Positions 56,639-63,413 of a DNA stretch of 64,000 bases are shown in pieces. The position numbers were made by a program, and so were the translations under genes. Source of the stretch: Entomortierella parvispora E1425 (Eukaryota > Fungi > Mortierellomycota); NCBI GenBank assembly GCA_020891255.1, contig BQFW01000012.1:2046001-2110000 (forward strand). Reading direction: 5' to 3'. How positions within the stretch are numbered: the stretch's first letter is position 1; the number at the start of each line of letters is the position of its first letter. The notes below the pieces were generated by a model. It was not told where the DNA came from and made no database searches. It saw only the letters and a program-made list of their open reading frames with translations.

Positions 56639-58009
56639 TCAAGATGAGGCTGCTCTAGCGTAGATATCATCCTCTTCCGGTTCAAAGAATCCTGGCACCC
56701 AGTACTCGTATGGTTCTGCCTGTTGATCGATCCACATTAGACTGTCCTCCAACAGAGTATTCTAAAAACGCAGAGCAAGGAAGACTTGTTAGTCAATATA
56801 CACTGCTCCGATGCCTTGTTCAAACAGAGAAGGTAAAAAGAAAAAGGTGAAAAAACAAAAGAAAAAGAAAAAGGTACAATACCAAAGCTGTTGTCGTCCG
56901 TCCTGTTTCCCATCCAAGTTTTTCGCGCACAATATTGACATTGACATGTCCATTCGTTTTCTAGAGAAAATTATATAAAAAATTAAAAAAAAAACCCCCC
57001 CCAGCTCGGGTTAGTATCCACATTCGGACGCACTTTAGTGGCGCAGAAACTCCTCATCACAAAGAGCCCAGAGTCCAAAAGAGAAGGTTGGATATACCTG
57101 AACAAGGCCAAGAATCACGGACTGATCCCGATTCAGCTCGCGAGGAACAGAACTAATCATCTTTTTGTCGCCAATTTGCAAGACCTGGAACCCACTTCCC
57201 AACGGCGCCAACGTCTTGACCGACCGCAGAACATCGTCTTCTGTGATCTCCATATTCGTATTCTCTTTGCTTTGGCTGTTGGAGGACGTTGCTGCAGAGA
57301 AAGCATTGGCCCATTTGCTGCCACTGTTGCCATGATTTTGTGTCGGGGATGGATTCCTAACGCCTCTCATCCGTTCCACCCGTCGCTTCACCTCGGACAG
57401 TTCCATCAATCCGCCATTCAAGGCCCTTGTCGAAAGACAGACGTCGATGATCTGAATCCCCAATTCGTAGTAAAAGTCTCCCACCCCAAGAAGTTCTCCC
57501 CAGTATCCTTTGCTGGCTAAATATGATAAAAAGGACGACCGCAAATGTCCACGTTAGCTCAAAGGCTTCAAATGCCAGATGCGTTCTCTCTTTCGTTTCC
57601 ATCTTTTCTTGATTAAGCGAAGCGTTCCAGAATCATAAAAAGATATCCTTACAGGCAAGAGGATCGACGCCAATGTTACCGCACATCTTTTGAAAGTGCA
57701 TTCGAAAGACGGGATCCTTTTGGATATCCTTTCGATGCAGGCGAGCAAAGGTCTCGAGGTTGGCCCTGAATGTCTCCATTTGCTTCTGCAACTGCTCCAT
57801 CTGGTTGTCAGATATCGTTTGGCCGACGCGCTGGTAAGACTCCTGTAATGAGCACACCCAACAAAGCGAATGGTTCGGTCAGTAACATTGCATGTCTATA
57901 TGCTTTCTCATGTCCATCCATGATTGCAGCCAATCCTTTCGCCACTTGCATTCGTTGCCTGCAGGCGCTCTGCGTAGGCGCGACCACCGACTGGACGTCT
58001 CCGGTTCAT
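56639..58009 (-). CDS. SNF8: ESCRT-II subunit Snf8/Vps22
   Basis: Exons 58009-57950 (GC donor), 57842-57652, 57516-57098, a short exon about 56961-56883, and a last exon about 56761-56639. FRANLETFARLHRKDIQKDPVFRMHFQKMCGNIGVDPLA|SSKGYWGELLGVGDFYYELGIQIIDVC, VPRELNRDQ, LMWIDQQ...YWVP. Confidence 0.93.
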
Positions 58010-58228
58010 GGTGTATTGAGATTTTGATTCGAGAGCTGGATGAAAGAGATGTAGGTTCCAGCATGCATGCAAAGCTCTCGAAAATAACTTTCGTGTCACG
58101 GGGTTTTTTTATTTCGAGGTGCTTTTTTTTTCTGTTTTTTCTGGACCAAAGATCATGTTCCTGACGACTGCAAACGCGTTTTTCGCAAAAAGGGTGGCCA
58201 GCCCTGAAAGTCCCTTGGCACTGTCGGA

Positions 58229-60267
58229 TTAGACTGGAAGATCAGCCGTGTTGGACGAAATCTCGGTGAATTTCAGTCCGAGAGGGTCCAAACCTTTCAA
58301 GGTGAGGTCGTTTGCGATTCTGGTGATAATATCGCAATTCTGACCAACATCCATGTACGATGCCAACCTAAAGTAGGAGGAGGTTTGGGCTGTCATTCAT
58401 ATGCTGAAGTGAACAGAATAAATGATCAAGAGTTCTCACAACTTACATTTCCAGATACATGTCTGGGTTCAGCGACATTCCAGAGAGATTCAAAATCATT
58501 CGAACGCTTGTGTGGCCTTTGTTCTGAAGAGCTCTGCTTGAAATTTGGGGGGTCACCAAGAGCCCACGAACTGCCTCGGACGACTCTGCCAAGCTGACAA
58601 CGGTGAGCTAGAGAAAATTCATGGAAAAGGGCATTCAGCCTCGACTGTTGGTAGACCAAGCCATACATAAACAATCGAATGTGAGTGATCACTTACGACT
58701 TTGGCCTTCTTCTCCAGTGTGTCCTTCAAGTGAGCCGTCTCTGTCACGTCGCGGCAGATGACGACAACGGCATGGTTCTCGCTCAACGCAATAGCTCGCA
58801 AGAGAAGTGATTCCGTCAGAGACTCATCCGCGAAGCAAAAATGATTTGCCGACGTCAAGTTCATGTGGTCGAGACTGAACACGGCCTTTCGGTCATCAAA
58901 ATCAAACGCTTCTGATGCCTTTTCAATCTCCTTGGTGCCAACATGGCAAGCAAGGATGACCTGGCAAATTGACAGCCGATCAAGAGTCGCCGCAATACGT
59001 CCCTCCGTTCTTGCGTTTCGGAACACGTATTCGGCCTCGTACACCAGCAGGATACAGACGTCTCTGATCCTGATGACTTGTTGGTCAATCAAAGAGGGGT
59101 AGATCTCAGGCGTGGTAATGATCACCGAGGGCTTGTCGAATGTGTTCTTTAGATCTGCAGCGTCTTCGAGGATCCGGACAAAGTGGACATCGACGCGAAC
59201 CTCTGAGATCTCGATGAACTTTTGGAGCGACTCGATCATTAATCGTGTGCTTTGGTTATCCCAGCGGTTCACCAGGATCACAATCTGAGTCTCTTTTGCC
59301 TCACCGTCGACCATGTCAATGATAGAGTAGTTTGCATACTCTGCCAATCTCTGCCCTCTCACCTGAAGGATCGTGTCAGAGCCTATAAATGAATCGTTGG
59401 GGCAGTCAGTATGATGACCGTGTTGTTGATCTGAACCCAGTGTCATATACCACAAACCTACCGTCGACGAGCGGCCGCAAAATGCATGTCTCCAAGTAGC
59501 CTGTGCCAGTCGCACTACATTCCAATAATGATGGTGCTCCATTTTAGTACATGAGTCTAGAGCCTCAAGTCTGCTATAAAGAAACGTGTTTTCATCGTGA
59601 TAATTACCCATTTGCTTGAAGGCATTTCAATGTGCCATCTTTGAGCTCCAATGCATTTGGTGGACCAAGAGGTTCCTGGGGAACAGAATCAAAGACCTGG
59701 CCAACATTTCCCGTTTTCAAGACCGGTTAGTACGCGTGATACTTGCCAAGGAAGACATCAGTCCAATAAAAAGCTTACCACAAGATCCCATTGATGCCTG
59801 ATGAAAGGCGGCGGGCCTCGCCTCCCAGCCCTGCTCTTCCGCGCATTTCGCAAAAAGTGGGGGTCGTGTCTACGAAGAGGCTGAGCTTGACCCTGGAGAC
59901 CAGAGTCCTGCTTTTCCGTATGTGGCGCAGCGGCGTTCACGTTGGAGATCAGGTTCTCTTCCACGAGTCGTTTCTCGAAACGCTCAACGTTCAGGACGAG
60001 CCGGCGCAAGCCTTCTTTGAATGCAAAAAACTCGCTCGCGATGCTCTTTCTCGGAGCTTGGGATGCAGAGACCACTGCTGCAGCACCAGAAGTCTGGTCG
60101 AGCGCAGTCGTTTCTTGAAAGGGCTTTGGGAGTGAATCTGTTGCCAAAGGCGCGCCGCTGGTGCTGGGTTCTCCGGTGCCTGTAGTGGCGGCATCCTGGG
60201 GGATCTGGTCGGGCAGAGGCACTCCCTGTGTCTGTTGGAGATGGGTGGATCTTTCAGTACCGAGCAT
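58229..60267 (-). CDS. eIF4A-like DEAD-box pseudo-helicase (538 aa; catalytic motifs degenerate) with an N-terminal extension
   Basis: Exons 60267-59779, 59696-59608, 59514-59462, 59382-58697, 58607-58447, 58367-58229; all GT-AG, 1617 nt in one frame. Colinear with eIF4A from HQWDLVVFDS (eIF4A SNWNEIVDS) to NTADLPV* (eIF4A NVADLI*). Confidence 0.78.
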
Positions 60268-60484
60268 GCCGTGGACAGAGATGATGCAGTCGATATAGAG
60301 TCAGAGTGATGATCGCGTGAAGGAGAAATAGAAGAGAAACAGAGAAACAAAACAAAAAAAAAAAAAAAAAAAAAAAAAAAAGGAAGGGAAGGAAAAAAAA
60401 AAGAACTGAATCATCCTGACATTTAAAGGCTTGATGCTGTAGATATTAAATGTATGAGCTTTTATTGTGTAAGGGTATCGAGTT

Positions 60485-63413
60485 CTATGTCGACCAGAAG
60501 TTCAAGAGCCAGATGATGCCAAAGAAAATGCCGACCTTCCATGTTGGCTGGGCCCACAGGGACTTGAAAGTCACAGGTACTGCATCGGAATCGCGTGAAT
60601 GGTCTCTTTCCCTGCTAGTGTCGTGGTTGTTGGTACTACTGCCATTGTTGTTGGACTCGATCAAAAGCGACACAGACTCTTGCTGTCGTGCCGACTGTTT
60701 GCTCTCGCCTTGCGTCGGCGACTTGTCGAGAGAATTACTCAAGTCAATGTCTCCTGATGATCCAGACTCGGATAGTTCGTTACTTGTGGCTGTCTCCAAG
60801 CGAAGGCTGGCGTCCATTAGCTTGTTCAGGGCATCCGGTCCAGGAGGTCCAACGGCTCCTGCAGAAATGGCAATGGGCGAGAGCATGACAGACTGTCGCT
60901 TGACAGGTACCGGCGTTCCTTGTGCCGACACTGGTCTTTGCCGTGGGGTGGTGTTGACTAGTGGAAGTGCTGGTGGAGGAGCGGGAAGGCCCTTGACTTT
61001 AGGTTCCCGTCCTGTAATCAGCCAATCCGTCAATTCTCCTGTGGCTCCACTGAGCTGGTTGGAAATGACGATGAAAAGAATTGTAGACAAAATCAGGTTG
61101 AAGCTCCATGATCCTGCGCCTTCGAGCCAAGGTGAAACCATCAGCAAACCCTTTGTATCCGCTGCAAGCCACATGTGGAATTGGCAAATAAACGTTTCAA
61201 GAGAACACCGGCCAATGTAGGCATAGAAGGTCGAAGTCGTGTTGCGTAGATCGGCTGTACTGTTGCGGAGGACCACAAAGCTGAGAATAGGGATCCAAGA
61301 GATGTAAGGGTGGTGAAGGTTGTACTCGCGCTTCTCCATCGTACTCTCAAAAAGGAAGAATCCGAGCAATCCAATAACTGACGAAATAATGGCGACCGTC
61401 CTGGCCTTTGCCCAGTGGGGATGAGCGGTAATCGACAGCTCCTGCGCCATGATGAAGCCGTAGGAAAAGAGTGAGCCCACAAATACGATCCAGACGTCAA
61501 GTTTCAGACGGAAACGCCATTCTGCTGCTGACCAAGTGATGCCAAAGAAGAACTTTAGGACTGCAAAGGTAGTGTCGAGAACAATAGGCGTATATATCAT
61601 TGACGCACTGAGAATGGCGGTGGCGACAATTTTCCCTATCATGAACACTGGCTTGTGGTTGTGAGTATGTCCCAAGTACATCATCCCGTAGATGACCAAG
61701 TAAAAGAACGAGACCAATGGCGCAAAGTAGTAGGAGATGTAGGTCGTGTCCATCGTGTACGCGAGCAGGACTGTAAGCAAGTTCAGTCTCGTCAGGATCA
61801 TGGCCACTCGCCGGAAGCCAAAATCAGCCTTTTTGTAGTAAAACACGAAATGGCCGAACCCAGTCATGAACAAGTAGCTAGCTACAAAAACACGGACAGG
61901 GTTGTAGATGACTGACACGCTCGACGCTCCCATGTAGTGATAGATCAGAATCGCAATCTGCATCCATCCTTTCCATTCGTCCGTTTGGTCCCTGCTCAAA
62001 AATGGCTGATCCTTCTCTGCTCTCTTCAACGTTGCGAGTCCAGCAACAAGACTGAGGAAGCAAAGGAACATAAAAGTGGGAGTCGAGTACGCCTTCCCGA
62101 TTTTGGCAAAAAGTGTCGTTCGATCCGAATAGTACATGTAGAGGATTGATCCTGCCATGACCGCCATTGCTCGCAAGACTCCAATGCCCGGGAAGAAAGC
62201 TGCGAGAGGGTGTTCATTATAACCTATAATGGCATCATATGTGAAGAGAAAGGGATGTGAGAATGACGTTTGGGTATACACCTGGCAATGGCGAGCATTG
62301 GCAGCATCCAGCAAGCAGACGTACGGGTTTGGACGATGAAGCCAATGGGGAGCCAGATCATGAGGAGCGCTAGCATCAAGCTTTGAACGCCGCTGTTCGC
62401 CGGGTATTCGTAGCAGCAGGTTGCTGCCATAGGAGCGACTTTAGGCAACTGGTTATTGCAGACAAAATTGAGCATAACATCAGCCTCGGCAGACATGACC
62501 CTCTCAGCAAAGTGAAGTCCATCCCTGGTGGCGTCCATTGCAGTCTCTGTCATCTTGTTCCAAACGAATGGTACGGTAACAACAGTATTCCGTGTAATGC
62601 TCTTCAAATAGATATTCATCTCCTCAATGTCCTTGAGTCGAAGCGTCTCATATCGAACATCGGATAGCTTGTCAGGGTTGACAGATTGAATTGAGGAGAT
62701 AAAGAGATGTTTTCCAGGTGACGCCGAATCGGGGTCGTTCATGACTTTGACAACATTGGCCATGGTCTTTTTCCACTCTTCCAGGCCTCCGGACCATTCT
62801 CGGTACCGAAGGAACCACATCCCACTTCCGACAAGGAAAATTGTTGGAGTCTGTGCAACTGGCGCATTTTGATATTGTCCAGAAAGCAGTTCTTGAGCAG
62901 TTGTCGTGTTCAAAACGGGATCCCAGTAGAATTCAAAGGTCGTTCCTGACGTTGGGTCCGTGTGAATGATGTTTGCGTGTTTATCCCGATCTGTGGCAAA
63001 GTCAGGGATGAATTTCTTGACAACCGAATAAAAGAGCTGGCGAACAACAGAGTCGCCGATCATGACAACCCTTGACTTGCCTAAGCAAGAGGTCGCAGAC
63101 GTGGGTTCATAGTTTTTCAACATGCATCCCTTGGGTTGCCACTGTGTCCGCTGGGTGTCAATCCAAGATCCTCCGTGGTTCAGGAGACTCTCGCAGTGGG
63201 TCTTGTCTGCTGGGTCTATTTTGACAAAGGTGAGGGGTTAGCGATTTGAGCGGTTAATCCCTTTTACCTCGGTGTTGTGCCTGTGCAGTGCCTGAGCTTA
63301 CCAACGATGGGCCTGACGGCAGCCAGAGCCAATAGAGCAGCAGCCAAGGCCCAGAATAGTGCCTGAATACCCTTCTGGTATGATGACGATGTGAAGGAAG
63401 GAGCTGCGTGCAT
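60485..63413 (-). CDS. CAS1: Cas1/CASD1-like O-acetyltransferase (SGNH-like lumenal domain plus multi-TM domain)
   Basis: Exons 63413-63302, 63215-62325, 62223-60485. WQPKGCMLKNY, MIGDSVVRQLF (GDS), RDGLHF (DxxH), FLSRDQTDEWKGWMQIAILIYHY, YLFMTGFGHF, YYFAPLVSF, EWRFRLKLD, GRCSLETFICQFHMWL. Confidence 0.93.

Follow-up and report, generated by a model that had tools for sequence, protein, structure and literature searches.

Can a gene that follows the DEAD-box helicase eIF4A from end to end, yet has lost its catalytic motifs, encode anything other than a decaying relic, and what might such a protein do? This question is raised by a gene on the minus strand of a 64,000-nucleotide stretch of the Entomortierella parvispora E1425 genome (NCBI GenBank assembly GCA_020891255.1, contig BQFW01000012.1, positions 2,046,001 to 2,110,000; hereafter "the window"), deposited as EMPS_09027 and annotated only as "hypothetical protein". 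An early reading of the bare sequence, which we call the original prediction, had seen in it an intact eIF4A paralog with every ATPase and helicase motif replaced and a selected noncatalytic role. Our analysis leads us to a similar view: we consider it likely that this is a coding gene kept by selection, that it arose as a duplicate of eIF4A before the Mortierellaceae diverged, and that its product is now a catalytically dead "pseudohelicase" serving as a binding scaffold or adaptor.

The gene model was rebuilt by hand from the raw minus-strand sequence. As predicted, six exons with consensus splice sites join into a single frame of 538 codons: the five introns (82, 93, 79, 89, and 79 nucleotides) are bounded by GT..AG throughout, several carry TACTAAC-like branch points, and the product is identical letter for letter to the deposited EMPS_09027 protein (P0001 in our set). 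An alternative model with a 34-nucleotide intron 2 and a retained intron 3, which would yield 540 amino acids, was rejected because such an intron is too short and because the peptide encoded by exon 3 (GY.E..IL.PL..G) is kept in orthologs; the ortholog of Mortierella sp. GBA43 splices this exon likewise.

The fold of the protein was assessed on AlphaFold (AF2) models. A first model built from five sequences reached a predicted local distance difference test score (pLDDT) of only 49 and was superseded by one built from a 24-sequence alignment, in which the pLDDT of the core is about 90 and the predicted template modeling score (pTM) is 0.68. When the latter was compared to the PDB with Foldseek, at least 500 matches had E ≤ 0.001, and the 50 that were listed are all DEAD-box helicases aligned over both lobes, headed by eIF4A-III in the exon junction complex (EJC; E = 3.9e-15). 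VIA-align comparison of the whole model with whole chains gave Z = 22-26 over about 345 residues, and lobe 1 by itself superimposes on the DEAD domain of human eIF4A1 at 2.7 Å over 212 of 218 residues (Z = 24). A fold search of Swiss-Prot agrees on the DEAD-box fold, and searches of the AFDB clusters and the ESM Atlas returned generic DEAD-box helicases only, with no annotated look-alike pseudohelicase. The tandem RecA1-RecA2 DEAD-box fold is thus retained in the predicted structure, and the match to tandem RecA domains that an eIF4A paralog calls for was found both by Foldseek and by VIA-align (Z = 24-26). The best whole-chain matches are open, apo, or partner-bound structures (DDX39A apo, Dbp5-Gle1, and DDX6-CNOT1 MIF4G; Z = 25-26) and not closed RNA-bound ones, which we take only as a hint.

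Its parentage was approached through profiles. Pfam searches with the exon pieces and a phmmer search of the PDB with the single sequence found no match, and none of the 24 family members passes the Pfam gathering score for PF00270 or PF00271, with one faint DEAD match at E = 0.02 and no Helicase_C match among them. A five-sequence profile searched against the PDB had only eIF4A-I/II among its top 12 matches (best E = 1.2e-3), and the 24-sequence profile again placed eIF4A-I/II in all 12 best positions (E = 6.9e-7 to 8.4e-6), ahead of Sub2 (E = 3e-3) and eIF4A-III (E = 0.04); the corresponding scores are 28-31.5 bits for eIF4A-I/II, 19.5 for Sub2, 15.7 for eIF4A-III, and 15 for Has1. Alignment of profiles with hhalign mapped residues 171-438 onto residues 19-287 of 14 fungal eIF4A sequences (96% probability, E = 4e-9), and joint MAFFT alignment with fungal eIF4A shows colinearity that starts at the "ESNW" segment ahead of the Q motif and reaches the C-terminus, with about 17% identity. 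Furthermore, intron 2 interrupts Gly193 ("ANG|AT") at the same codon and in the same phase as the intron in Gly41 ("AYG|FE") of eIF4A genes of Rhizomucor pusillus and of the eIF4A copies of Dissophora globulifera. We roughly estimate, rather than compute, that one such coincidence would arise by chance in about 2% of cases; the four remaining introns are not shared with eIF4A genes. Judged by sequence profiles, the nearest relative therefore appears to be eIF4A and not another DEAD-box subfamily. The likeness to eIF4A that had originally been noted by eye stands as far as colinearity is concerned, supported by MAFFT, profiles, and structure, but no single-sequence match is significant, and it is because of the profiles and the structure that this likeness became evidence.

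Against this background of a predicted eIF4A-like fold, the motif loss is complete (Table 1). The table of replaced catalytic motifs in the original prediction was reproduced by colinear alignment with fungal eIF4A across 20 orthologs, except that SAT had been read one register off as ACH where CHV is correct. Motifs Q, I, Ia, GG, Ib, III, QxxR, V, and VI are absent in 20 of 20 orthologs, motif IV is also lost, and at motif VI the change from HRIGRGGRFGRKG to EMLASYMDVGQNC has removed the arginine fingers. Since the loss extends across the whole family, it predates the diversification of that family. What replaced the motifs is itself conserved: 29 positions are the same in at least 17 of 19 members, and 13 of these keep the eIF4A residue. 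Among the 13 are the G.D..Q ahead of motif I, the P in TPGR, the E and A in DEAD, the Q ahead of SAT, the C in motif IV, the T in motif V, and the Y ahead of motif VI. New, family-specific residues stand at the remaining 16 positions, which cluster in the former ATP cleft. The core as a whole is acidic, with an isoelectric point (pI) of 4.9.

The family is old and confined to one group of fungi. An exhaustive phmmer scan of 1.84 billion representatives gave 29 matches at E < 1e-3, 24 of which are clear family members, and a family profile search of a 5.8-billion-protein set found no member outside Mortierellaceae. The named members come from 13 genera of Mortierellaceae, among them Entomortierella, Gryganskiella, Mortierella, Dissophora, Linnemannia, Gamsiella, Podila, Lunasporangiospora, Actinomortierella, Modicella, Lobosporangium, and Haplosporangium, and all of them are labeled "hypothetical protein" save one model fused to the adjacent gene snf8, which bears its neighbor's name. 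In a phylogeny that covered the family and eIF4A-type sequences, the family is monophyletic (support 100/100), and Linnemannia, Podila, and Actinomortierella each form a strongly supported clade, as vertical descent would predict. The tip branches of the family measure 0.2-1.3 changes per site versus 0.02-0.16 in canonical eIF4A. Two sequences from assemblies that are both labeled Actinomortierella ambigua (P0020 and P0022) fall into different 50%-identity clusters with tip branches of 0.35 and 0.44, which points to strains that are mislabeled or highly diverged, or else to unusually rapid evolution of the gene in these fungi.

Selection on the coding sequence was assessed with an ortholog on a metagenomic contig (L001) that has an open frame of 541 amino acids and shares 70% protein identity and all ten splice sites with the window gene. 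Exon lengths differ between the two by multiples of three and intron indels are of odd length, and exons are 67-88% identical compared to 44-64% for introns. Calculated with NG86, the ratio of nonsynonymous to synonymous substitution rates (dN/dS) comes to 0.26 for the whole protein, with values of 0.195 in the core, 0.155 in lobe 2, and 0.38 in the N-terminal extension; with YN00, it is 0.37 overall, 0.31 for the core, and 0.59 for the N-terminal extension. In a second strain represented by DNA contigs, about 6% diverged, each of the seven indels falls within intron 1 or intron 4 or beyond the stop codon, and the 14 exon changes among 40 listed substitutions (of about 130) comprise nine synonymous and five nonsynonymous ones.

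Evidence for expression comes from Mortierella sp. GBA43. Two Logan contigs, L004 (SRR6256838) and L005 (SRR6256837), match the genome of this strain (L006) with 99-100% identity per block, and the blocks are separated by genomic gaps of 78-183 nucleotides that start with GT and end with AG; these contigs are therefore spliced transcripts. Five of their junctions coincide exactly with codons 163, 193, 211, 439, and 493 of P0001, i.e., with the five introns of the window gene, which means that the ortholog is transcribed and that its splicing agrees with the gene model. All five junctions thus have RNA support from two runs, in a relative and not in E. parvispora itself. The two runs differ in 5' splicing, with N-terminal isoforms of 547 and 517 amino acids. 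Taken together, a dN/dS of about 0.2-0.26, indels that avoid exons, and spliced ortholog transcripts bear out an open frame under selection: the pattern is one of purifying selection on a loosely constrained protein, not of a recent pseudogene.

Upstream of the core, exon 1 encodes an N-terminal extension that is disordered in the AF2 model apart from one helix at residues 76-103. The coiled-coil-like segment that had been noticed there corresponds to this helix, whose pLDDT is about 85 and whose hydrophobic pattern recurs in orthologs across the family. It is followed by a basic segment that ends in a conserved Trp aligned near the "ESNW" segment of eIF4A.

How could such a protein work? In the scenario that we favor, an eIF4A gene would have been duplicated before the living Mortierellaceae diverged, and the copy would have lost the adenine-reading Q motif, the P-loop, the Mg-binding and catalytic DEAD box, SAT, and the arginine fingers of motif VI along with most contacts to the RNA backbone (GG and QxxR deleted, Arg of motif Ib gone). 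Canonical ATP binding and hydrolysis would then be impossible, and RNA clamping like that of eIF4A or eIF4A-III would not be expected. A protein that can neither hydrolyze ATP nor close on RNA would therefore act by binding, presumably as a nucleotide-independent scaffold or adaptor. The rebuilt former ATP cleft (LQxRG, (Y/F)EAEY, CQVILAC, SYMDxG) probably fixes the geometry of the two lobes, and the N-terminal helix together with the basic tail probably attracts partners or directs localization. Because the gene is under selection and its ortholog is expressed, a selected noncatalytic role is the right frame; this part of the original prediction is upheld by descent, motif loss, selection, and ortholog expression, but its more specific guesses at a role found no support.

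One of these guesses was a decoy of the eIF4G/Pdcd4 type. In a wider form, an eIF4A mimic would sit on the HEAT1/MIF4G domain of eIF4G or on another MIF4G/MA3 protein (Pdcd4-like, CWC22, Gle1, or Not1) and tune translation or assembly of messenger ribonucleoproteins (mRNPs) without ATP. The closest relative being eIF4A speaks for such a role, as do the open, apo, or partner-bound structures among the best whole-model matches. The residues of human eIF4A1 that contact eIF4G are R45, D265, E268, D296, and T298, and a single substitution, E268R or D296K, is enough to reduce binding (PMC7470955). The position of R45, which contacts D982 of eIF4G, is K or R in 16 of 19 members, and that of D265 is acidic in 13 of 20 (E in 12 of 20). 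However, in an alignment that is less certain for lobe 2 than for lobe 1, the position of E268 is Lys in 13 of 20 members (a charge reversal), that of D296 is A, T, or V in 19 of 20 and Pro in the other, hence never acidic, and that of T298 is hydrophobic (V/I/L/A/M) in 19 of 20. With three of five contact positions changed, the canonical eIF4G interface is therefore not preserved, which disfavors a decoy that uses this interface and makes a mimic of this kind, on the whole, unlikely. A co-evolved partner is conceivable instead. We could imagine, as a rather improbable case, a nucleotide-independent and conformationally fixed "eIF4A look-alike" for a co-evolved MIF4G/MA3-type or other eIF4A partner. 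A more speculative variant would have the look-alike soak up a factor that targets eIF4A. In both forms, the protein would be a lineage-specific regulator or guard of translation initiation, and the partly eroded paralogs in an array of Dissophora hint that eIF4A duplicates recurrently supply material for such a change. Mortierellaceae, this species included, are reported hosts of Burkholderia-related endobacteria, and the Burkholderia toxin BLF1 targets eIF4A (PDB entry 7pq0, which is among the structural matches).

An ATP-independent RNA clamp or EJC-like mRNP mark, in which the lobes, perhaps together with the basic tail, would hold RNA permanently, is very unlikely. The basic segment has a pI of 11.8 over residues 113-165, the Arg of motif Ia (NR) is kept in most members as is the TP of motif Ib, and the top structural matches include eIF4A-III in the EJC. 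Against this, the family lacks the GG loop and the QxxR helix and retains neither the Arg of motif Ib nor motifs IV and V, the core is acidic, and closure of the RNA cleft of DEAD-box proteins requires bound ATP, for which no site is left here; the RNA clamp or EJC-like scaffold of the original prediction is accordingly disfavored. Even less credit is due to the notion of an unorthodox enzyme whose rebuilt cleft ((Y/F)EAEY, LQxRG, SYMDxG) binds a nucleotide or small ligand for chemistry or ligand sensing: the positions that vary least within the family are found along the former ATP cleft, and the Glu and Ala of DEAD are kept in all members, but P-loop, Q motif, and arginine finger are all gone, and packing of the structural core would give the same conservation. 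Equally improbable is a relic without function, i.e., an eIF4A duplicate in decay that is called as a gene only by accident of prediction. It would account for the loss of all catalytic motifs, the fast evolution, and the absence of Pfam matches and of any name beyond "hypothetical protein", but is largely refuted by an open frame and splice sites kept across 13 genera, by the dN/dS and the exon-avoiding indels, by the newly fixed motifs among the 29 family-invariant positions, and by the spliced and expressed ortholog.

Several points weigh against our preferred reading of a selected, eIF4A-derived scaffold or adaptor. The scaffold role is suggested by lost features and by analogy, and the relative orientation of the two lobes is an AF2 prediction. 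Ancestry from eIF4A specifically, rather than from another DEAD-box subfamily, is indicated by profile scores and one intron. No RNA run was listed for E. parvispora, so that expression is known from the ortholog alone. Finally, a dN/dS of 0.2-0.4 combined with branches roughly 5-10 times as long as those of eIF4A describes a loosely constrained protein.

Among known systems, eIF4A (Tif1/Tif2 of yeast; human eIF4A1/2), the minimal DEAD-box helicase of eIF4F, is the best profile relative and has the same two-RecA fold. The resemblance extends to colinearity up to the C-terminus without a C-terminal extension, the phase-2 "AYG|FE" intron, an acidic core, and 13 of 29 invariant residues. Unlike eIF4A, to which it is about 17% identical, the Mortierellaceae family has lost all nine helicase motifs, carries deletions of one residue in the P-loop, two residues at GG, and about 11 residues at QxxR, has a 160-residue N-terminal extension and changes at three of five eIF4G contacts, and evolves roughly 5-10 times faster. 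None of the catalytic features that define a helicase is left, so the family should not be classed among the helicases; its members are best described as a DEAD-box protein, eIF4A-type by its apparent descent, and an independently evolved DEAD-box pseudohelicase.

The view that no characterized fungal protein resembles it overlooks yeast Utp25/Def, a pseudohelicase of the small-subunit (SSU) processome with a validated DEAD-box-like fold and a structural role (PMC9539457). Both have a two-lobe DEAD-box-like fold and N-terminal accessory sequence, and the helicase motifs of Utp25 are dispensable or degenerate. However, Utp25 is an essential ribosome-biogenesis factor, universal among eukaryotes, with a Pfam family of its own, whereas the present family is Mortierellaceae-restricted, eIF4A-derived by all appearances, and of independent origin. 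The Utp25 model was not found among the Pfam matches of the 24 members at E ≤ 10, and we rejected membership in Utp25 because of this lack of a family match and the lineage-restricted distribution. The other relevant comparison is MUT-15, a pseudohelicase and scaffold without ATPase activity in the CPUG complex of C. elegans (bioRxiv 10.64898/2026.09.04.749402). It shares the tandem RecA1-RecA2 DEAD-box fold, the absence of a Q motif, and a replaced DEAD box (NNAE in MUT-15, YEAE in the window gene), but is a nematode small-RNA amplification protein with a known partner surface on RecA2 (eLOTUS binding), and no sequence relationship was found. The literature search turned up no specific report of a pseudohelicase of the eIF4A type or of an eIF4A paralog in Mortierella.

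DEAD-box-fold pseudoenzymes have been recognized recently (Utp25 in 2022, MUT-15 in 2026), each as an organizing scaffold of an RNA-processing machine. The Mortierellaceae family adds a third, independent case with a clear parent in eIF4A, complete motif loss, newly fixed cleft motifs, and family-wide retention, and represents a natural experiment on the capacity of the eIF4A fold without ATP. Genetics is workable in Mortierella alpina, which makes the question of partner and pathway experimentally tractable, and proteins that the databases now label "hypothetical protein" without any domain can be annotated as eIF4A-derived pseudohelicases. We view the family as a clean, old, and fully eroded eIF4A derivative of moderate interest.

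Other eIF4A duplicates with damaged motifs came to light as well. A contig of Dissophora globulifera (L002:1-8573; JAAAIO010000704.1) contains at least four eIF4A-like genes with open frames, arranged in tandem on one strand; piece by piece, their identity to eIF4A ranges from 25% to 68% (from 38% to 68% in genes 2-4). None of them looks canonical, and they differ in the subset of damaged motifs (e.g., AYRSEETT, DDAD, SGT, DPSID, AKPEVAKT, and ENAD). Stand-alone eroded paralogs outside Mortierellaceae are P0029 of Crepidotus variabilis (KAF9532711.1; DRAGTAKT, TAT, LRLCPGGSFG) and P0033 from a JGI metagenome (AY--SDKT, DEVD, FTK), which were the first non-family matches of P0001 in the phmmer scan. 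Unlike the pseudohelicase family, these eroded paralogs are 28-68% identical to eIF4A and recognized by Pfam, and in the tree they fall not in the family but in the clade that contains canonical eIF4A, whose support of 94/87 is slightly below the star threshold of the tool and whose inner branching is unresolved. This suggests that eIF4A duplicates have repeatedly been retained and eroded in this group.

Table 1. Features of the pseudohelicase gene and its neighbors in the window (positions are those of the window; for motifs, the eIF4A sequence is followed by that of the window gene and of the family).
Feature	Position	Strand	Remarks
Whole coding region	58229..60267	minus	six exons, five introns, 538 codons plus stop; NCBI EMPS_09027
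Exon 1, codons 1-163	59779-60267	minus	N-terminal extension absent from eIF4A; mostly disordered in the model, pLDDT <50 for 1-73 and 107-149
Amphipathic helix, residues 76-103	59959..60042	minus	SEFFAFKEGLRRLVLNVERFEKRLVEEN; predicted, pLDDT about 85; weak coiled-coil PDB matches
Basic Pro/Arg-rich segment, residues 113-163	59779..59931	minus	predicted disordered; pI 11.8 over residues 113-165
Intron 1	59697..59778	minus	82 nucleotides, GTAAGC..CAG, TACTAAC branch point; 2- and 8-nucleotide insertions in second strain
Exon 2	59608-59696	minus	
Intron 2	59515..59607	minus	93 nucleotides, phase 2 in Gly193 of "ANG|AT"
Exon 3	59462-59514	minus	53 nucleotides
Intron 3	59383..59461	minus	79 nucleotides, GTAGGT..ATAG, ACTGAC branch point
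Exon 4	58697-59382	minus	
Intron 4	58608..58696	minus	89 nucleotides; second strain with 1-nucleotide insertion and high substitution density
Exon 5	58447-58607	minus	
Intron 5	58368..58446	minus	79 nucleotides, phase 2 in Met493
Exon 6	58232-58367	minus	stop codon at 58229-58231
RecA1-like lobe, residues 164-375	58889..59696	minus	exons 2, 3, and most of exon 4 with introns 2 and 3
RecA2-like lobe, residues 376-538 plus stop	58229..58888	minus	end of exon 4, exons 5 and 6 with introns 4 and 5; lacks QxxR helix of about 11 residues
Motif I remnant, residues 216-223	59345..59368	minus	LQVRGQRL; Q217, R219, and L223 invariant in family
Former DEAD box, residues 325-329	59027..59041	minus	YEAEY
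Former motif VI, residues 493-504	58334..58367	minus	MLASYMDVGQNC; (S/T)YMD(V/I)G(E/Q)xC in place of HRIGRGGRFGRKG
Q motif			GFERPSAIQQ; GATGTGYLET; G(I/V)T..GY(L/I)EK
Motif I (Walker A)			AQSGTGKT; VR-GQRLA; (L/V/I)R-G.(K/R)L with one residue deleted, GK[ST] in 0/20
Motif Ia			PTRELA; NRWDN; NR(L/V)..
GG loop			GG; two-residue deletion in family
Motif Ib			TPGR; TPEI; TPE(M/I)
Motif II			DEAD; YEAE; (Y/F)EAE in 20/20
Motif III			SAT; CHV; CH., AH., or CQ. (e.g., CHV, AHD, CQH)
QxxR helix			present in eIF4A; about 11 residues deleted in family
Motif V			ARGID; SRALQ; lost in family
Motif VI			HRIGRGGR; EMLASYMD; (E)M(L/M)A(S/T)YMD(V/I)G(E/Q)xC
snf8/EAP30 (ESCRT-II) gene	57035-58011	minus	start, read by eye, about 218 nucleotides downstream of the pseudohelicase stop
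Cas1-type acyltransferase open reading frame	60485-62314	minus	

In the window, the pseudohelicase gene lies between a Cas1-like acyltransferase gene and snf8, and the metagenomic contig L001 has the same order of a Cas1-type acyltransferase, the ortholog, and snf8/EAP30, followed by Gcd10. snf8 is immediately downstream in the five other taxa with a visible neighborhood or a fused gene model; it is found there in L001, GBA43, Lunasporangiospora, and Haplosporangium, and two gene models fused to it by predictors are P0018 and P0057. This synteny with snf8 and the acyltransferase yielded no functional clue. The GBA43 contigs (L004:1-5581 and L005:1-5139) run unbroken from the pseudohelicase open reading frame (ORF) via about 205 nucleotides into the snf8 ORF and on into a convergent NAD-kinase gene, a continuity that reflects overlapping untranslated regions or read-through. 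The 217-nucleotide spacer that separates the acyltransferase ORF from the start codon of the pseudohelicase gene contains a 45-nucleotide A/G-rich stretch at 60338-60382 with about 25 A residues in a row (plus strand), probably a spacer of the poly(dA:dT) type in a promoter or terminator.

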